Positions 7,996-17,454 of a DNA stretch of 64,000 nt are shown here, in pieces (within the stretch, counting starts at the first letter, position 1; every line of letters starts with the position of its first letter). Position numbers and translations under genes: made by a program. The notes below the pieces were generated by a model. That model had not been told where the DNA came from, made no database searches, and saw nothing but the letters and a program-made list of their open reading frames with translations. Where the stretch lies: positions 1-64,000 of the forward strand of contig DF237155.1 of the NCBI GenBank assembly GCA_000708835.1, read 5' to 3'. The stretch is from Klebsormidium nitens. Lineage: Eukaryota; Plantae; Klebsormidiophyceae.

Positions 7996-10900
7996 TTAAG
8001 CTAAAGCTTCTTCGATGATCTCTTTAACCTCCAATGTGTGTATGTCGAAGGCCCCTGTTGCTGCCGAGGCGGAGGGTGATCGGCCAATGTACCGAACTTC
8101 ACGGCCAACACTGCTTTTTGACTGCTCCAAATGGTGCCCGCTTTGGGGTTCGGGCAATAGGTCCCGCAAGGCCGTCGCTATTCGTGGCTGGACGTACGTC
8201 CATGCACCACGATTCTTTGGCTCCTCCTGAGAAATCATAGGAAAGGGGATGAAAAGATATGAGAAGAAGCAACTCGACCAAGGGCGACCGCAGGTGAGCT
8301 CCAAGTGTGTGGGGCGCTTGGATCGAGCAAGAATTGGTGCAGCGCTTCATCTTCGATTGCTGGACATCCAATATTTCAGGGACCCGCCCAGCGACGCCGC
8401 TCACTTACGAATCTTCTCTATTCCTGCAAGGAGCCCCTCAACCGAAGTTGGTGACACATGCAAAACAAATCAATGCAGATTGACTCACTTGAACCCAACA
8501 CAACTCGGCGTTCGGATATTGGCTGATCCGCTTGGCCACCCGATCGAAGGGGAAGGGCGCAATCTGCTCCAACCGCAGCAGCGCCACGTCTTTGACGCCG
8601 CGCCCCCGCCGAGCGTGCGCCAGAAGGTAGTACACCTGGGAGGGCGGAAACGGCAGAATTTTTGAGCGGCTTCGAAGCAAGGATGGAGGTTCAAAGCCGA
8701 TGCGAAAGCTGGGGCACTCGATAGGTAAGCAAACAGACTATCTGCAAAAGCTGTAACGCCAGAAAACTCACAGCGGCCTCCGTCGAAGGAGGAGCGCTGC
8801 TTTTCGAGCAGAGTCATCAGAGCCACTTGGTTAAGAGTCCACGTCATTCAAAAACGGCTGTGGGGATCCGATCGTGCCAGTGTGGCAGGTTCGTCGAGTT
8901 TAACACAGTTCTTTAACGACTTTAACAGAGTTCTAAGCGGACTAATTGTTGGCGCGATCGAGTCTAAGATGACTACATTCCGATGTGATGGGGACCTCAT
9001 AGTGTGCGAATAACACGAGCATGTATGCCCGCAAGACTCTGCGAGGCCGTTCGTTGATCAGCGCGCCCACCTTGCCGCTGCACAGAATGACCCTTCTGAC
9101 TTTCTCTTTCGGCATGAAGTCGGGGGCCAGGCCCACGTTGTCCGCTGTGTCGCCGTCCGCAATCAGCCGCCTGCACGTGCCACGTCATCGGGATCACACT
9201 TTCGGGATGTGACCAGAGCAAGCTGCTTCGTAGAGAAAGCGTCTGAGAGCATGCCCCTTGCTAAGTAGTACTGCCGGGTCTCTCCTAAATCTGCGCTCGC
9301 ACTAGTGAACCCAACGGAAACCAAGGGCTGAACATGATAGTGCCTGGACGGCCGCACCTGAAGTAGGCCCCTGTCGCCATGTCCGCGAGACTGGAGGTGC
9401 AGGCCCGGTGGTGGAGCAGGTACTGCAAATCGGTAGACGGGCATCAGCGGGCTGGCGCGACTGAGCATTGACTGTCCGATTCTGTCATTGATTATGCAGC
9501 CCGCAGCAAAGTAACAGGAGAGTCCTCTGGTGCTGCTCAGCGCAGGGCACGAAACGGCGGTGAAAGATGAAGAAGGCCTGCACTCACCTTCGGAGCCATG
9601 CATATGAGCGGTTTCGAAAAATACCGGTTCACCTGCAAAGCAAACGTCTGCTTCAACGATGCGCGATACTACAGTGAGGTGCCCCCTAAAGCCAGGATGC
9701 CGATACTAAATAAGCAGCCCCCTGAACGGCTACACCGAAATACACATCACTGAAGAACCCAAGAACAATGGACTCAATCCTACGGCTTACTTTACGTTCG
9801 GAGCCGTTCACGGGAGGACCTCAATCAGGTCTGCACAGGAGTCATGCTCTCAAACGGATCGGCAGAGCCCAATTGACTTCGCCTCGGGGACTCTCCACGC
9901 AGGGTGGGACTCACCTGGCGCCGCAGCGCATGGAAGATCTGGGAGGGGGTGCTGGCGTTTATAACACACCTGAAAAGAAAATTAACCTCTTTCAGGATTA
10001 GCAAGACTTCTTCGCATTGCCGCAGGTTGCGAAACTGTCCGGCGGCTTGATGATCCGAAGCAGCGCAGTCCTGTGCAGAAGCACGAGGGATTTGGAGCAG
10101 GTATCGCTGCAGTTCGAGAAGGCGGCTCCTCGGAAAAGATTAAAGGTCACAATCGCAAAGGCTCACAAGTTATGATCCTTCTCCGCGTTTCGTCGCAGCC
10201 ACTGCGCCATGACCAGGTTCCAGTCGTCTCTGCAGGGAGGCGAAGAGTGGCCCGTCAGAACGTAAGGGCCCTCCGGATCCTCGACAGCGTCAGACACTTA
10301 GCTTCGTAGAAAAATGTCGCACCAAATTGCTGCAGAAAACGGCAGGGACGTCGCATACAGGACATGTTCCCGGCTCTCGTCAGCTGCTACTGGTGAAAGT
10401 TGCGAGTAAGAAACCAAACAAGCTGCGCCTCACTTGTGCAGTCGGTTGGCCTTTGGGATGTCCAGCTCCTGCATCAGCACCTCCGCCTTCTCGCTGGTCA
10501 CGCCCCGGAACTTCCGCATGAACGCCAGCAGGTCCGCCTGCGTCACGTACCCCCGCCCGCCTGCACCCATGCCCCCAACCCTAAGATTCGCTGGCCCTGC
10601 TTGCCAGGTAACACGCATCTTCATCCTTTTAGGCACAGCGAAAGAGGATACGCGATAGACTTACTACAGCCCAAGGTTGCTTGTTCTTTGCGAAGGGCAT
10701 CCAATTCAGAACAACTGTACCCACTTGTGTCCGCGGCTGCAAAACCAGCTTCCATCTCTGCGCGGTGCGCGGGCCCGAGCCCCGGGAGGTGGTCGGGGTC
10801 GTCGTTGGCCAGCTGCAGGAAGCGCTCCAGGTACCCGCTACTGTGGTCGGGGCCCTGCACCGGGGTCCCAAGCCACGTGAAGCTTTGCAACCAGCGAACC

Positions 10901-13900
10901 AGTTCTCTCCCAGCTCGGGCCCTTGACCTCGCACCCAAGATGGTGTTTTCGACGGACTGTGCGATAGTTCCCCCGAGGGCAGAGGGTATGGTTTTCGTCG
11001 ATTGCGGTGAATTCCACCTTATGAAGTGCAGACTGGCCGAGCAACATCTTGGGTGCGAATTGTAGGTGCCCGAGGCAGGGACTTGAGCAATACGGCAGAG
11101 TGGCTACTTTGGCAGTGAAAACCTAGCAGCTCAGTCCGGAAACTCCGACCACTATGCTCTTTGGCGTGCTGCACTGACCTGGCCGTCGAAGCCGTGCGGC
11201 AGCAGCAGGACGAGGCCGGTGGGCGTGGCCCACTTCTCCTCGCCGCTCGTGATGAACGTGTCGATGATCAGCTGCGCGTTGTTGGAGAAGTCGCCGAACT
11301 GAAAGGAACAAACAAGCGGCGTCGAGAAACACTGCGATCATCCGTTCGACTCCTGACTGACCGTCCGACATTTCGAAGAAGGCGGAGGACAAAAAGTAGC
11401 TAAAGACTGCTGAGAGAAGTCCAGGCAGGAGCGAACGGTGACCGAGGCACGCCACAAATCCTATGGAGGCGCCCGAACGGAGTCCGGCAGAAGGCAAAAC
11501 AGCGTGACAGGTTTTGCAGAAGTGCGGCGGTCCCTTTGCTTGTGCGTGCTGACCTGCGCCTCCCAGAGCACGAGCGCGCTCTCGTTCTCGAGCGAGAAGC
11601 CGTACTCGAAGCCCAGGACCGCTGCCTCCGACAGGCTCGAGTTGCACACCTTGAACAGCTCCTGCTGCCCCGGGGCGATGTGGTTCAGCGGTACGTACCT
11701 GCGCATACACAGTTTAAAGTCGTTAACGAATTTCGCTCGCCCCCTCGACGCTAACCTTGGACATTTTAAGTTCTCGGTTATGAGCTGCCCTTTAAAAGAC
11801 CTGTGCGGCAATAACCATTGGAAAGAGATTGTTGTAACCTCTTCATTTTCATCGTGACCGACCTACTGTAGTCATCGGCTTTGGTTGCCCTTTTGATAAT
11901 CCAATCAATGGCTCTCACCTCTTGGCGGTGGTTTGGTCGTAGAGCACGGCGTGCCGCTGGTTGAACGTGCCCCGCTCGCAGTCCTGCCCGCTGAGGCGCA
12001 CGTGGTGCGCCGGGTTGGTGGCCGCCGTCTGGCCCAGCGCCGCGTTGGGGTGCACCAGCAGCGACCCGAACGCCAGCGCCTCCGCCGTCGCCCAGTCCAC
12101 GCCGCGCTCGCTCTCCACCATGCGCCGACGGGCAGCCAGCAGCCGGGCCACCTGCGGGCCGGGACAACGAGGTGGAAGTCTGCCCTCTGAGGCCGGGGGA
12201 GGGATCGCTTGAGTGGTTTCATGCGAAAGGCATAGAGCGAGAAGCAGAGACGGAAAGGGAGGGCGGCTTACGTCGGGGTGAAGGTCGAAGTCGGGAGGTG
12301 GTTCGCTGATGGCAAGCCCCTGCAGGAAGGCACCGATAGGATCGTCAAGTAATGCCCGCACCGCACCGCACCGCAAGTGAGAGGAGCGCGGGCTTCGAGC
12401 TTCGCAATGGCCTAGCTTGGCTAAACAGCACGTTGTGACAAAACAGATATCGTTACCCTCGTTCCTTGGCCCCAGACGTCTCGTGGAAAAGCTTCCAGTA
12501 TTGCCCGATAACAGGCCGACTCTGATGCAAGCTCTTGCCGTCTGCTGCGACTAACCACTTGCTTGAGCGTCTCGAGGGGCAGCCCGGTGGGCACGACGCT
12601 GCGGGACTCGCCAGCCCCCCCCAGCGCGTCGCCCTGCCAGTTGCTGGCCAGCCACTCCTGGGGCGCAGGGATGTACGCGGCCGCCGCGGCGTACTCGGAC
12701 TCGAATGCGCTTGTGAACTCGGCCGTCCAGGCATCCACCACCTGGGAAAAGCACGGGGGGAACACATCAGCTGAGCTCTGATAACAGAAAGGTACAAGTT
12801 GGACCTACACAGAGCTTGCGGTCGAATCAGTGTTTGCCGCTCTCTACCGCACCCAACATGTCCTAACCCGGTCCCAGCACCAAACTTGTGTGGACACTGT
12901 GGAAAGCTTTGGATGCAAGCGTTTCCAAAAAAGGATTCCTTGATGCTATCAAAGACGCTTGTATGCGCAAGAGGGCGGCGATCCAGCAGTCCTCTGCGAG
13001 CAGGCCGCCTTACCTCCTGCGTGACCCACTTCTCGGCAAGTGCGCGCTGCAGGTACAGCTGGTACGTACTGGGGTGGCTAGCAATGATCTTGGACGTCAG
13101 GGGCTGCGTCACGCGGGGGTCGTCCTGTGCTGGCAGAGCAAGAGGGTGAGGCCATTGAAGTTCCAACTTACATCGCAGTTCAAAGCAACTCGAGAGAAGA
13201 TTGCAAGCACATAGGTTAGTGTAGGTGAGTTGTTGGAAGACGATGAGAGTCCCTTGCCTGCTCATTGTGGCCGTGCCGGCGGTAGCAGACGAGGTCCACC
13301 ACCACGTCTCGCTTGAAGCGCTGCACGAAACAGACACGCGCGTCAGCTGCCGCCGGAATCAGAGCGAGGTTGACGGCAGTCCGGAAATGTTTCGCTCTGT
13401 TGCTCTACGCCCGTGCGGCACGAGATCTGGGGCGTCAACCATTCCAGGAGTCTGCAGAAGAATGAGCACGGGCCCACCTGGCGCCAGTCGACTGCCAGCT
13501 GGCACACGCGCACCACGGCCTCCGGATCGTCCCCGTTGACGTGGAAGATGGGCGCACCCACACCCTGCACGCGGAAAGCGGACTTTGTCTGAGGTTTCAT
13601 GAGACACGCAAAGGTTTCGCGAAGAACTACTCGACGACAAGACAGGACGACCAGAAGCTTCCGTGCGAGCAAGCAGGATTGGAAGAAGCGATAAGGCCAG
13701 GTACCTTGGCGACGTCGCTGGGGTGCGGCGAGGAGCGCGCGAGCTTGGGGTCGGTGGTGAAGCCGATCTGGTTGTTGAGGATCACATGGATGGTGCCGCC
13801 CGTCGTGTACTCGGGCAGGTCCGACAGCTGGCACACGGGCAAACGGGTTAATGTGGAGGTTTGGAAAGAAGATGGGGCATTCAACGGTGCCACCTTGTGC

Positions 13901-16900
13901 GCATAGACGAAAGTAAGCTTTGGATACGAAGGAAACGAATGTGAAATTGTTCCATTTTGATAGGACCTGACGAACAGCGTTGCACTCTTCGAAGAAGGTC
14001 TTGCAACTACGATACAATCAAATACTTGACTTAGCCGGCTCACCTGCATCACTTCGACCGGCAGGCCCAAGCCGCAGAACGCCGCATCACCGTGGAGAAG
14101 GAGGCCCTGCACAGACCGTCCAGAACGAACTCTCAGTTGGCGAATCGATGGCTTTTCTCAGGCCGTTCGAGGGCCGGAAGACGGCCTTGTACTGACGGCA
14201 CGGACAGAAAAGCACTCTCAAGGCCACTTCGTCCACATATGTCAGCAAGCAATGTAGAAAACCACGGTCGTGAACGCTTCTGTATGTCAAATGCACTCTA
14301 CGCAAGAATCCGCGACACCGACTCCAAGTCTGACGTCCAGGAGACGGCGTGCGGCGTGCTCACCAGGACCTTTTCTTGCTTGACGTCGTTTTTGAAGAAC
14401 TGCTTGGCCTTGGTCTTGCCCACCACCACCGCGTCCACCGCCTCCAGGTGGCTCGGGTTGGGCGACAGCGACACCGCAATCTGCAGCAACAAAAACGGAG
14501 GAAAGGTTTGAATCAGTACTGACTTTTCAAGCACCACGTTGCTGGGTCATCGAGACAGATGTACCAGAATACGCCTTCGTTTGACACGGCTAACAAAACG
14601 TCGGCTCGCGGTCAACCCTCGACATCTGAAAAGAGTCTGCAAGCGGCTGACCCCCACCTTCTTTCCCCCAAACTCGAGCTCCCCGCGCGTGCCGAGGTGG
14701 TACTTGACGTCCCCCACCTGCAGATACTTTGCGCGGCCGCCCATGAACTCGGAGATCATGGCGCCCAGCGGCTTGCGCAGAAAGTGGTGCAGCACGTTCA
14801 GCCGGCCCCTGCACGCACCCACCAGGCTCAGCGAGGCGCACCCGCTCGTGTCGGCAGTCTGCGAAGGCTGTACTGATGAGATCTGGAGAACTGTAGATTC
14901 AGTCGTGTCATACTGACGGCAACACTTTGTCAGCAGGTTTGAGAGCAAACAAGATGTGAAAGGAAGTGAGGGGTGTGTAGAAAGCGAGCGGCCTGACCTG
15001 TGCGCCATTCCCAGCTCGATGTTTTCAACCCCCGACTGGGCTGCCCGCTGCAATTATAAGGACTGGGTTACTCGCTGAATCTTTCCAGAGATCGAGAAGT
15101 CACGTTCAGCTGCATCTGACAAGACGTGTTGCGATGTAACGGGAGTTGAACGCCCACGAAATGCTCAAAAACGATACAATTTCGCAGCCCAGTGCAACCA
15201 TAGCTTCTCACGACCTTTCGAAGGAAAGCGGTCGCGTAACTGACCTCTGCCAGGGCAAACAGCCCCGCCATCAGGCTCTCGCATCCTTCAATGCCAAACC
15301 GCTTGGCGCTGGGGAACTTCGTGGCGAAAAAGCGCTCCAGCTGATCTGGACAGTCAGACAGGAGAACGGGTTGTGTCGCCAGCTCAGAGACGTTTTGACG
15401 CATTGAACACGATAATAATCTTGGAGAAGCATGGAGTAGCCTTGTCTTCTCATGGGGTACCATGAGGAAGTGCGTTATTGTCGACAGGGGCACAACAACG
15501 AGGACCAGGTTGAGGACCAGGTCGCCAAGCGATGTACAAAGCTGGTTTCAAACACCCAATGAGTTGCGAAAATCGATGAGTAATTCCTACTTGTTAGCCC
15601 CAATGGTTCGAACAACTGAAACTTCGACTCATCATACTGACTTCTAACACGACAGTGATGTTGAAAACAAGTTTCACTAATCACCTGTGTAGAGTAGGCG
15701 GCGCAGGATGAGGCGCTTCTCGGAGGGGCTGAAGAAAGACCGGTTAACGGGCCGCTCGACCATGGATCGCACCCACTCCTTCTGTTCCTTGGTGTTCACG
15801 TGCTCGTACTCGACCGTCAACGTCCCACAGTAACTACATGACGCCAATATTTCGAATTCGCTGAATCCAAGAAGCTATCATCACAAGTAGCCTTCAAACG
15901 AGAGGGCTACGTCTTTCGAATGAGTGGTGGGGCGGACAAACATGATTACAGTCTTTACACTGAGAAGTTCACTGGCCCGAGTCGCGGTCGTACCTGGCCC
16001 TCATAAGCGCCACGATCTCTGGGACCGTCCAGAAGAGCTGCGCGGCCTTGGCGATCCTGAGCTGATCACCCAGAAAGTATCTGCACACAGTGGGCAGCCA
16101 CATGAGCGAAGTGACTTTACGAGAAGCGGACTTCCGCCTTCCTTCACAGATTTTGCAATTGTCCGAGGTTAGGTTAACATGTTCTGTTGACAGAATCCAC
16201 CCTCCTCGAGATGCAACAGTCTAGGAGAACGTCACAGTCGTTATAAGAAAACTTAGGACTTTCAGCCAGGTACGGTCCACTTTCGAAAGACGAAGGGCCA
16301 CTCGAAGCCCTTTTTAGAAGACAGCTTATAATGGATTGGCTGCCACCAGTGTTCTGCGCACCTCGTGCGAAGGTCCACTCCTTTCAGTCCCACTGCGGAG
16401 AGGTCCAGCCGGGGGTAGTTCTTCATCAGCCGGTGCAGATCCTCAGCGTTGACTGGCTTGCCAATGTTGGCATCGCCATCGCCCTCCGTCAGCGGGCCAA
16501 GAGTGCGGCCCAGGGGGTCTGGACACCAGCTAAAAAGGTCCTCACCAAGAGCTTTCCAGCCAAACAGCTTTCCAGCAAGATTGTCCAGCCAGGTTTTTCC
16601 AATCCATAAAGTTTTTGATTGGTGGAGTCAGCAGAGTCATGGCATTTCAAGAAAGGCGAAGAGGGGGCAAAGCAAAATATTACAACAAGTGAGCTCCTGG
16701 AATGCTTTGCAAATGGCATTTGAGTGTCCGGAATTTATGTAACAAGATATGGAGTGATAGGAAGAAGTGGGATGGATGACATGAGGACATTATACAGCAG
16801 AAAGTTCTGATTGCTGTGGCCGATGTGGGGCCCAGCTTCCCCAAGCTCCCACTATGCTTTATTGCACTGATGCAGCTCAGCGAGGTGGTGGTGTGCCCTC

Positions 16901-17454
16901 ACCAAGCGTCGCTGCAAAGTGCCCCCTGCTACGGAACGCACGAATCAGCGTCACCAGCTTCAGCGTCTGTGAGATGTGCCTGATGTCCTGGGGGGGCTGT
17001 GGCCCTGCTTGTGCTTCACCAGGCACCCCATGCGTGCTGCTTGCACCACCTTTGGCAGGATGCGCCTGAGAAGTGCTTCTGTGAAACCGCCGGCCGTGCA
17101 ATTTCCAAATACTCTGCAGGACACCCTGGGTGCCAATTCTTGGGACCGACATTGTGGAGCTACGGCAATTCACTAACACAAAGATGGTACCCAACCCATA
17201 CAGCTTGCGGCATCATATCAAATGCACTGTCTGCTGGAAATTGGAGCAGCTCATTTGGTAGGAAGTTGCATCAGTGAAGCACCAAACCCTCGGAAAGTCA
17301 TTGCGCTCAGCAATACTAGGATGGTCTGCATTTGATGAGGAGAACCTAATGCCAATGCTAGTAATGCGGGCGCCCCACCAAAAGTACTAATAGAACCCCT
17401 TGCGGCTTGCCTCTGCCACTGGCAGTGGCGCTGCGCCAAACTGCGCCCAGCATT
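7996..17454 (-). CDS. OGDH: 2-oxoglutarate dehydrogenase E1 component (ThDP-dependent), over 20 exons, with an EF-hand-pair insertion; 5' end uncertain
   Basis: Exons give the following in order: [74 protein letters not shown]...[151 protein letters not shown]. Stop at 7996. The start codon is unresolved (about 17450-17700). Confidence 0.95.

Follow-up and report, generated by a model that had tools for sequence, protein, structure and literature searches.

Several mitochondrial proteins contain built-in EF-hands, namely the SCaMC/APC and aralar carriers, FAD-glycerol-3-phosphate dehydrogenase and the plant NDB-type NAD(P)H dehydrogenases, all with sensors that face the intermembrane space. 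The Ca2+ site of animal 2-oxoglutarate dehydrogenase (OGDH), the motif DADLD, is N-terminal and is not an EF-hand (PMC9177970), and the papers found on OGDH and Ca2+ treat only this site; the role of matrix Ca2+ in controlling the tricarboxylic acid (TCA) cycle has been described as "less clear in plants" (PMC8890496), and the extent of mitochondrial Ca2+ control over this cycle outside animals is unsettled. Here we describe a gene of the streptophyte alga Klebsormidium nitens, located at 7999..17152 on the minus strand of the window (the whole 64,000-nt stretch of DNA analysed, positions 1 to 64,000 of contig DF237155.1, assembly GCA_000708835.1), which encodes an E1 paralogue of OGDH with an EF-hand pair inserted in its pyrimidine-binding domain. 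Like the mitochondrial EF-hand proteins above, it joins a module of the Ca2+-sensor type to a metabolic protein, but unlike their sensors the pair would lie in a presumably matrix enzyme dependent on thiamine diphosphate (ThDP). It is probable that the gene represents the K. nitens member of an old and widespread OGDH E1 paralogue, in which the pair most likely serves as a regulatory or docking module with low affinity or independent of Ca2+.

The public K. nitens protein encoded by this gene (P0036, 1067 aa, insert included) is named 2-oxoglutarate dehydrogenase E1 component. With canonical mitochondrial OGDH E1, represented by human OGDH (PDB 7WGR/8I0K) and the plant and green-algal OGD1-type enzymes, it has in common the E1_dh, Transket_pyr and OxoGdeHyase_C core (161, 115.6 and 157.6 bits, respectively, all over the Pfam cut-offs) as well as the ThDP and pocket motifs. 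In contrast to the canonical enzymes, the paralogue contains an EF-hand pair of ~81 residues (P0036 773-853), falls in a separate clade and lacks the N-terminal domain PF16078 (2-oxogl_dehyd_N), which was unmatched in P0036, P0144 (Physcomitrium) and P0155 (Pycnococcus), whereas canonical P0087 and P0094 (Chromochloris and Prunus OGDH) matched it at 48-52 bits and were without EF-hand. The missing motif corresponds to peptides of human E1o that have been proposed as a dual E2o/E3-binding region (PMC8146983).

P0036 was retrieved by searching the insert region of one intron-free open reading frame (ORF) from a metagenome, and tblastn of this protein on the window placed ~24 exons between 17152 and 7999 with identity at or near 100% over the exon cores, the local matches overrunning a few residues into the introns. 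The insert sequence of P0036 equals the spliced exon model exactly. Three exons, all on the minus strand, encode the pair. Exon A (10725..10854, 130 nt; GPDHSS...EAGFAAADT plus one base) provides a core helix, the NDDPDHLPG turn, the entering helix of the first EF-hand (EF1), D789, T790 and one base of S791. Exon B (10434..10560, 127 nt; GRGYVTQAD...NRLH plus two bases) provides the remaining EF1 loop, the EF1 exiting helix, a linker, the entering helix of the second EF-hand (EF2) and most of the EF2 loop (DIPKANRLH-), and exon C (10167..10229, 63 nt; DDWNLV...KDHN plus two bases) supplies the closing part of the EF2 loop (K-D-D) together with the EF2 exiting helix, leading back into the core. 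Both loops are therefore split by introns: the EF1 loop, D789-D800 (10532..10731, coding 10731-10725 and 10560-10532), by a 164-nt intron at 10561-10724, and the EF2 loop, D824-D835 (10223..10462, coding 10462-10434 and 10229-10223), by a 204-nt intron at 10230-10433. The codons split at the junctions are A/GC (Ser), AA/A (Lys) and TT/G (Leu). Past the insert, the core strand and helix of Transket_pyr resume in exon D (9915..9969, minus strand), as placed by the RNA joints and by motif comparison with canonical OGDH.

The three insert exons belong to the dominant mRNA. In RNA contigs from four runs of four studies (two organism labels) mapped on window positions 8000-13900, the joints 10854/11179, 10560/10725, 10229/10434 and 9969/10167 all lie within one contig in each of the four runs, and the exons are joined as the initial annotation had predicted. 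Eighteen runs contain 26-39% of the sampled words of this 5.9-kb stretch, the level expected for spliced RNA, and after shifts of the ambiguous cuts the introns are GT..AG, bar 13124/13258. The donor after 10725 is the one in use, although its earlier description as part of the only phase-compatible splice was inexact, because a second in-frame donor exists after 10665 (TGTA/GTAAGT, 10659-10665, minus strand), 60 nt downstream of the used one with no stop between them. This donor would place 20 extra residues inside the EF1 loop; it was used by no contig of the four runs and was rejected. Given the exon lengths of 130, 127 and 63 nt, only exon C skipped alone keeps the frame, so that exon skipping cannot yield an insert-less protein.

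The pair occupies a loop on the surface of the pyrimidine-binding domain, directly past the conserved LPHG...GQGPDHSS...ERFLQL segment, and interrupts Transket_pyr between profile positions ~134 and 135, which agrees with the location first proposed; the EF2 exiting helix passes straight into a core strand. The insert was also rightly set apart from the DADLD site of animals, which is N-terminal. Between the HSS and TTP motifs K. nitens has 109 aa, where canonical plant and animal OGDH, with a loop of roughly 20 residues, have 41 aa, so the net insert is ~68 aa. This net gain is smaller than the figure of about 80 added residues first given, and exon A begins with 20 aa that belong to the conserved core.

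By profile and predicted fold, the insert is a genuine EF-hand pair. In the proposed Pfam/PROSITE scan, Pfam EF-hand_7 (PF13499) matched the fragment P0036:751-872 at 25.0 bits (E 2.5e-5, profile positions 6-60 of 67), under the cut-off of 30, and a PS00018-type PROSITE pattern was unmatched. Exon B alone reached EF-hand_7 at E 0.007, and 18 of 41 homologous inserts matched this profile (best E 3.5e-8). At the family level the resemblance is far beyond chance: an insert-only profile of the 41 inserts (A4) reached calmodulin at E ~1e-18 (70 bits) with a whole lobe aligned, which we take to be decisive for EF-hand homology. AlphaFold2 models from insert alignments (predicted local distance difference test, pLDDT, 75-78) predicted helix, loop with beta bridge and helix, twice over; in the model with pLDDT 77.8 the helices span residues 3-16, 26-37, 41-50 and 61-80, and each of the two loops has an E-E bridge. 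The top 50 Foldseek matches were all calmodulin, calmodulin-like proteins or troponin C (E from 2.6e-3 upward, target TM-score <=0.70), and VIA-align matched 70-80 residues to centrin, calmodulin, troponin C, S100 and the regulatory domain of SCaMC (4ZCU) at Z 8-9.9 and a root-mean-square deviation of 2-3 A. The pair thus shares with the calmodulin lobe, the centrin N-domain and troponin C two helix-loop-helix units, 12-residue loops and a short beta bridge, but unlike those it is built into an enzyme domain instead of being free-standing.

Insert-bearing OGDH E1 proteins were found in the streptophytes K. nitens and Chara braunii and the mosses Physcomitrium and Ceratodon; in the other green algae Ostreococcus tauri, Pycnococcus/Pseudoscourfieldia, a pedinophyte, Bryopsis, Caulerpa, Ostreobium, Trebouxia, Myrmecia and Scenedesmus; in the dinoflagellates Symbiodinium, Effrenium and Prorocentrum; and in four choanoflagellates, Salpingoeca infusionum, Hartaetosiga gracilis, H. 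balthica and Choanoeca flexa. No seed plant was among the ~45 insert-bearing matches, although the listings included canonical OGDHs of seed plants by the dozen. In two unrooted trees built without the insert columns, FastTree (108 rows) and IQ-TREE quick (58 rows), the rows with the insert make up one side of a branch whose support is 100, and the insert thus marks one old, well-supported clade of OGDH E1 paralogues. This speaks against the suggestion of the initial annotation that the module evolved independently in an algal lineage, as the insert is common to a clade that includes mosses, dinoflagellates and choanoflagellates. The annotation also implied that the gene encodes the canonical TCA-cycle OGDH, a view at odds with the absence of PF16078 from members of the clade and with the co-occurrence of canonical and insert-bearing OGDH in Myrmecia bisecta, Bryopsis sp. 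KO-2023 and Physcomitrium patens; a canonical K. nitens OGDH was not among the best 120 matches of the word search.

An exhaustive search of representative sequences with exon B found two genomic ORF fragments only, both in OGDH genes of related algae, which is no sign of rarity because clustering at 50% probably conceals full-length proteins with the insert beneath representatives that lack it, and a metagenome scan with the exon B alignment A1 found no relatives. The exon A word search returned many OGDH fragments with NDDPDHLPG followed by an amphipathic helix, and a metagenome scan with this motif gave 31 loci, several of them with intron-free full-length ORFs.

The initial annotation suggested that the pair may be a Ca2+ sensor; on this model EF1 of K. 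nitens would bind physiological Ca2+, directly activate E1 and so control 2-oxoglutarate oxidation. Its account of the loops was accurate as far as it went: EF1 has the canonical length of 12 residues with D1, S3, G6, V8, T9 and D12 and Phe at -4, and EF2 is indeed degenerate, but R5 of EF1 was omitted. The EF1 loop is strongly conserved among streptophytes, following the pattern D-x-[DES]-G-[KR]-G-Y-[LV]-T-x-A-D in K. nitens, P0029, Physcomitrium and Ceratodon, with the Chara loop (DRDGKGYLLKED) deviating at three positions, and exon A shows 100% amino-acid identity to that of the Klebsormidium-type relative L002, with a nonsynonymous rate (dN) of 0 at a synonymous rate (dS) of ~1.08 (dN/dS 0). 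In the family a sensor role is plausible, because six of the 41 members (Pycnococcus, the L011 protein and four further sequences) keep EF1 loops that match the PS00018-type pattern, with the consensus loops DPDNNGWINADE in Pycnococcus and DVNGNGVLSLEE in L011. Against such a role in K. nitens itself, ligand position 5 of EF1 is Arg (Lys in mosses and Chara), position 12 is Asp, not Glu, and the loop contains two acidic ligands only; EF1 fails the pattern at position 5, and EF2 fails at several positions and is unable to help, being degenerate in 41 of 41 homologues with no match to the pattern (0/41), a further departure from the lobes of calmodulin, centrin and troponin C. Moreover, L002 has Gly at EF1 position 3 and Asn at position 5 (splice inferred by homology), and ligand positions therefore drift within the genus. 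Because of Arg5, Asp12 and the degenerate EF2, Ca2+ sensing is unproven in K. nitens and seems less likely than not, and direct activation of E1 by physiological Ca2+ is rather unlikely.

It is more reasonable to suggest that the K. nitens domain is a low-affinity or Ca2+-independent module, because streptophytes have Lys or Arg at ligand position 5. The ancestral insert could have been a one-site Ca2+ sensor, with a functional EF1 and a non-binding partner EF2, and this arrangement might still be present in Pycnococcus, some dinoflagellate-like sequences and others. The streptophytes, including K. nitens, would have kept D1, G6, the hydrophobic residue at 8, T9 and D12 under purifying selection, together with Lys/Arg at 5. 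The module might act in one of two ways: the pair of helices on its flanks could relay its open or closed state to the active-site loop close by, or a hydrophobic groove of the module could grip a partner helix (of E2o, of E3 or of the enzyme's own N-terminus) and so replace the lost N-terminal binding motif. A bolder possibility, which we put forward tentatively, is that the clade represents an undescribed ancient isoenzyme in which a built-in EF-hand, not DADLD, puts 2-oxoglutarate oxidation or E2o/E3 assembly under direct Ca2+ control, the streptophyte version with Lys/Arg5 being a derived low-affinity or cation-mimicking "locked" form.

A functionless insert, tolerated as an expansion of a variable surface loop and an EF-hand by ancestry only, would fit the range of HSS-to-TTP loop lengths in the family (23 aa in many bacterial-type enzymes, ~41 aa in canonical eukaryotes and 106-148 aa in insert-bearing ones), the faster evolution of exon B (dN/dS 0.41 against L002) and the low-complexity expansions between EF1 and EF2 in L019 and P0063. 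Nevertheless, this explanation is very unlikely, since green algae, mosses, dinoflagellates and choanoflagellates have kept the insert, which cannot be skipped as a whole in frame, and since conservation over the 41 homologues reaches at least 90% at its F position and, in exon C, at the W, M, E and N positions. With dN/dS of 0 in exon A and 0.016 in exon C, the comparison with L002 indicates purifying selection on the module, weakest in exon B.

As for the enzyme, the sequence leads us to conclude that the gene product is E1o-type. Comparison of the predicted protein shows the 2-oxoglutarate pocket and the ThDP motifs to be intact, the latter as GDAAF...NNQIGFTT. A DHTKD1-type 2-oxoadipate dehydrogenase (E1a), likewise a second OGDH-family E1 without PF16078 that occurs alongside OGDH, and presumably also marked by GPDHSS, which P0036 has rather than GPEHSS, is a most improbable identity and was rejected because DHTKD1 scored 593 bits against 748 bits for human OGDH, the best match of P0036 among solved structures, and differs in the pocket segment (49.8 bits versus 64-70 bits to 2-oxoglutarate enzymes), where the P0036 motifs GDVKYHLG and NPSHLEAV are identical to those of the solved 2-oxoglutarate E1 enzymes OdhA and KGD. 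DHTKD1 has no EF-hand insert.

Some points weigh against our interpretation. The EF-hand_7 scores of P0036 stay under the gathering score both for the fragment and for the full protein (20.7 bits), and the best Foldseek E narrowly misses the tool's line of 1e-3. The RNA support consists of contigs rather than raw reads and concerns the dominant form only, so that rare isoforms are possible. Since the trees are unrooted, a single origin of the insert is consistent with them but unproven, and continued binding of Ca2+ or Mg2+ would be an equally good explanation of why D1, T9 and D12 are so strongly conserved among streptophytes.

Full-text literature searches turned up no report of an OGDH with an EF-hand, and the insert-bearing second copy has apparently been unstudied so far. 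UniProt has automatically named the Physcomitrium, Ceratodon, Chara, Prorocentrum and Pycnococcus members "EF-hand domain-containing protein", which shows that standard profiles are able to detect the domain. Our results define a recognisable family, whose members combine an OGDH E1 core with an EF-hand pair but lack the N-terminal E2/E3-binding motif, and correct the picture of a lineage-specific invention: the insert is a shared old character, from which the consensus Ca2+ ligands appear to have been lost many times. Such repeated loss could serve as a natural experiment on the role left to an EF-hand when Ca2+ binding stops or nearly stops, and because the family is present in the tractable Physcomitrium, Klebsormidium and Ostreococcus, the Ca2+ question is directly testable.

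Several further observations concern members of the clade. Isoform X1 of Physcomitrium patens (P0146) differs from X2 (P0144) by 16 extra residues inside EF2, between ..RIE and RDW.., which sit exactly at the position of the K. nitens exon B/exon C intron; this intron position thus seems conserved between K. nitens and moss, and the moss form may be an alternative splice form that disrupts EF2. The HSS-to-TTP distance reaches 141 aa in P0057 and P0063 and ~168 aa in L019 (L019:5112-5654), with long Ala/Gly/Ser-rich low-complexity stretches between EF1 and EF2. In Bryopsis sp. KO-2023, the insert-bearing BSKO_04329 and the canonical BSKO_04201 (P0047 and P0233) probably share a contig, as both are listed with a longest contig of 8,237,333 bases. 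Among the choanoflagellate rows (P0038, P0051, P0060 and P0061), three were long enough for FastTree and group with the pedinophyte and P0052 (support 87) among the green-algal members of the clade, whereas Choanoeca flexa P0060, of 820 aa, was too short; the dinoflagellate sequences are likewise nested within the green-algal part, and this nesting may reflect horizontal or endosymbiotic transfer.

Elsewhere in the K. nitens gene, P0036 has a short acidic EGDGDAN after LDPLG at ~95-101 (window ~16480-16500, minus strand), which we take to lie roughly in the region of the animal DADLD site and which is not conserved in the moss paralogue. The intron at 13124-13258 (minus strand) seems to be GC..AG, since the RNA joint 13123/13257, which has four ambiguous bases, reads GCAA...ACAG when shifted by +1. 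Contigs of low depth (4-10, versus 30-76 for the spliced contig) are unspliced across 8197-8517, 9606-9940 and 12291-12584 and may represent pre-mRNA or retained introns. At window position 8307, an intron-spanning contig of run X9 (organism label B) has A instead of G, which is probably strain variation.

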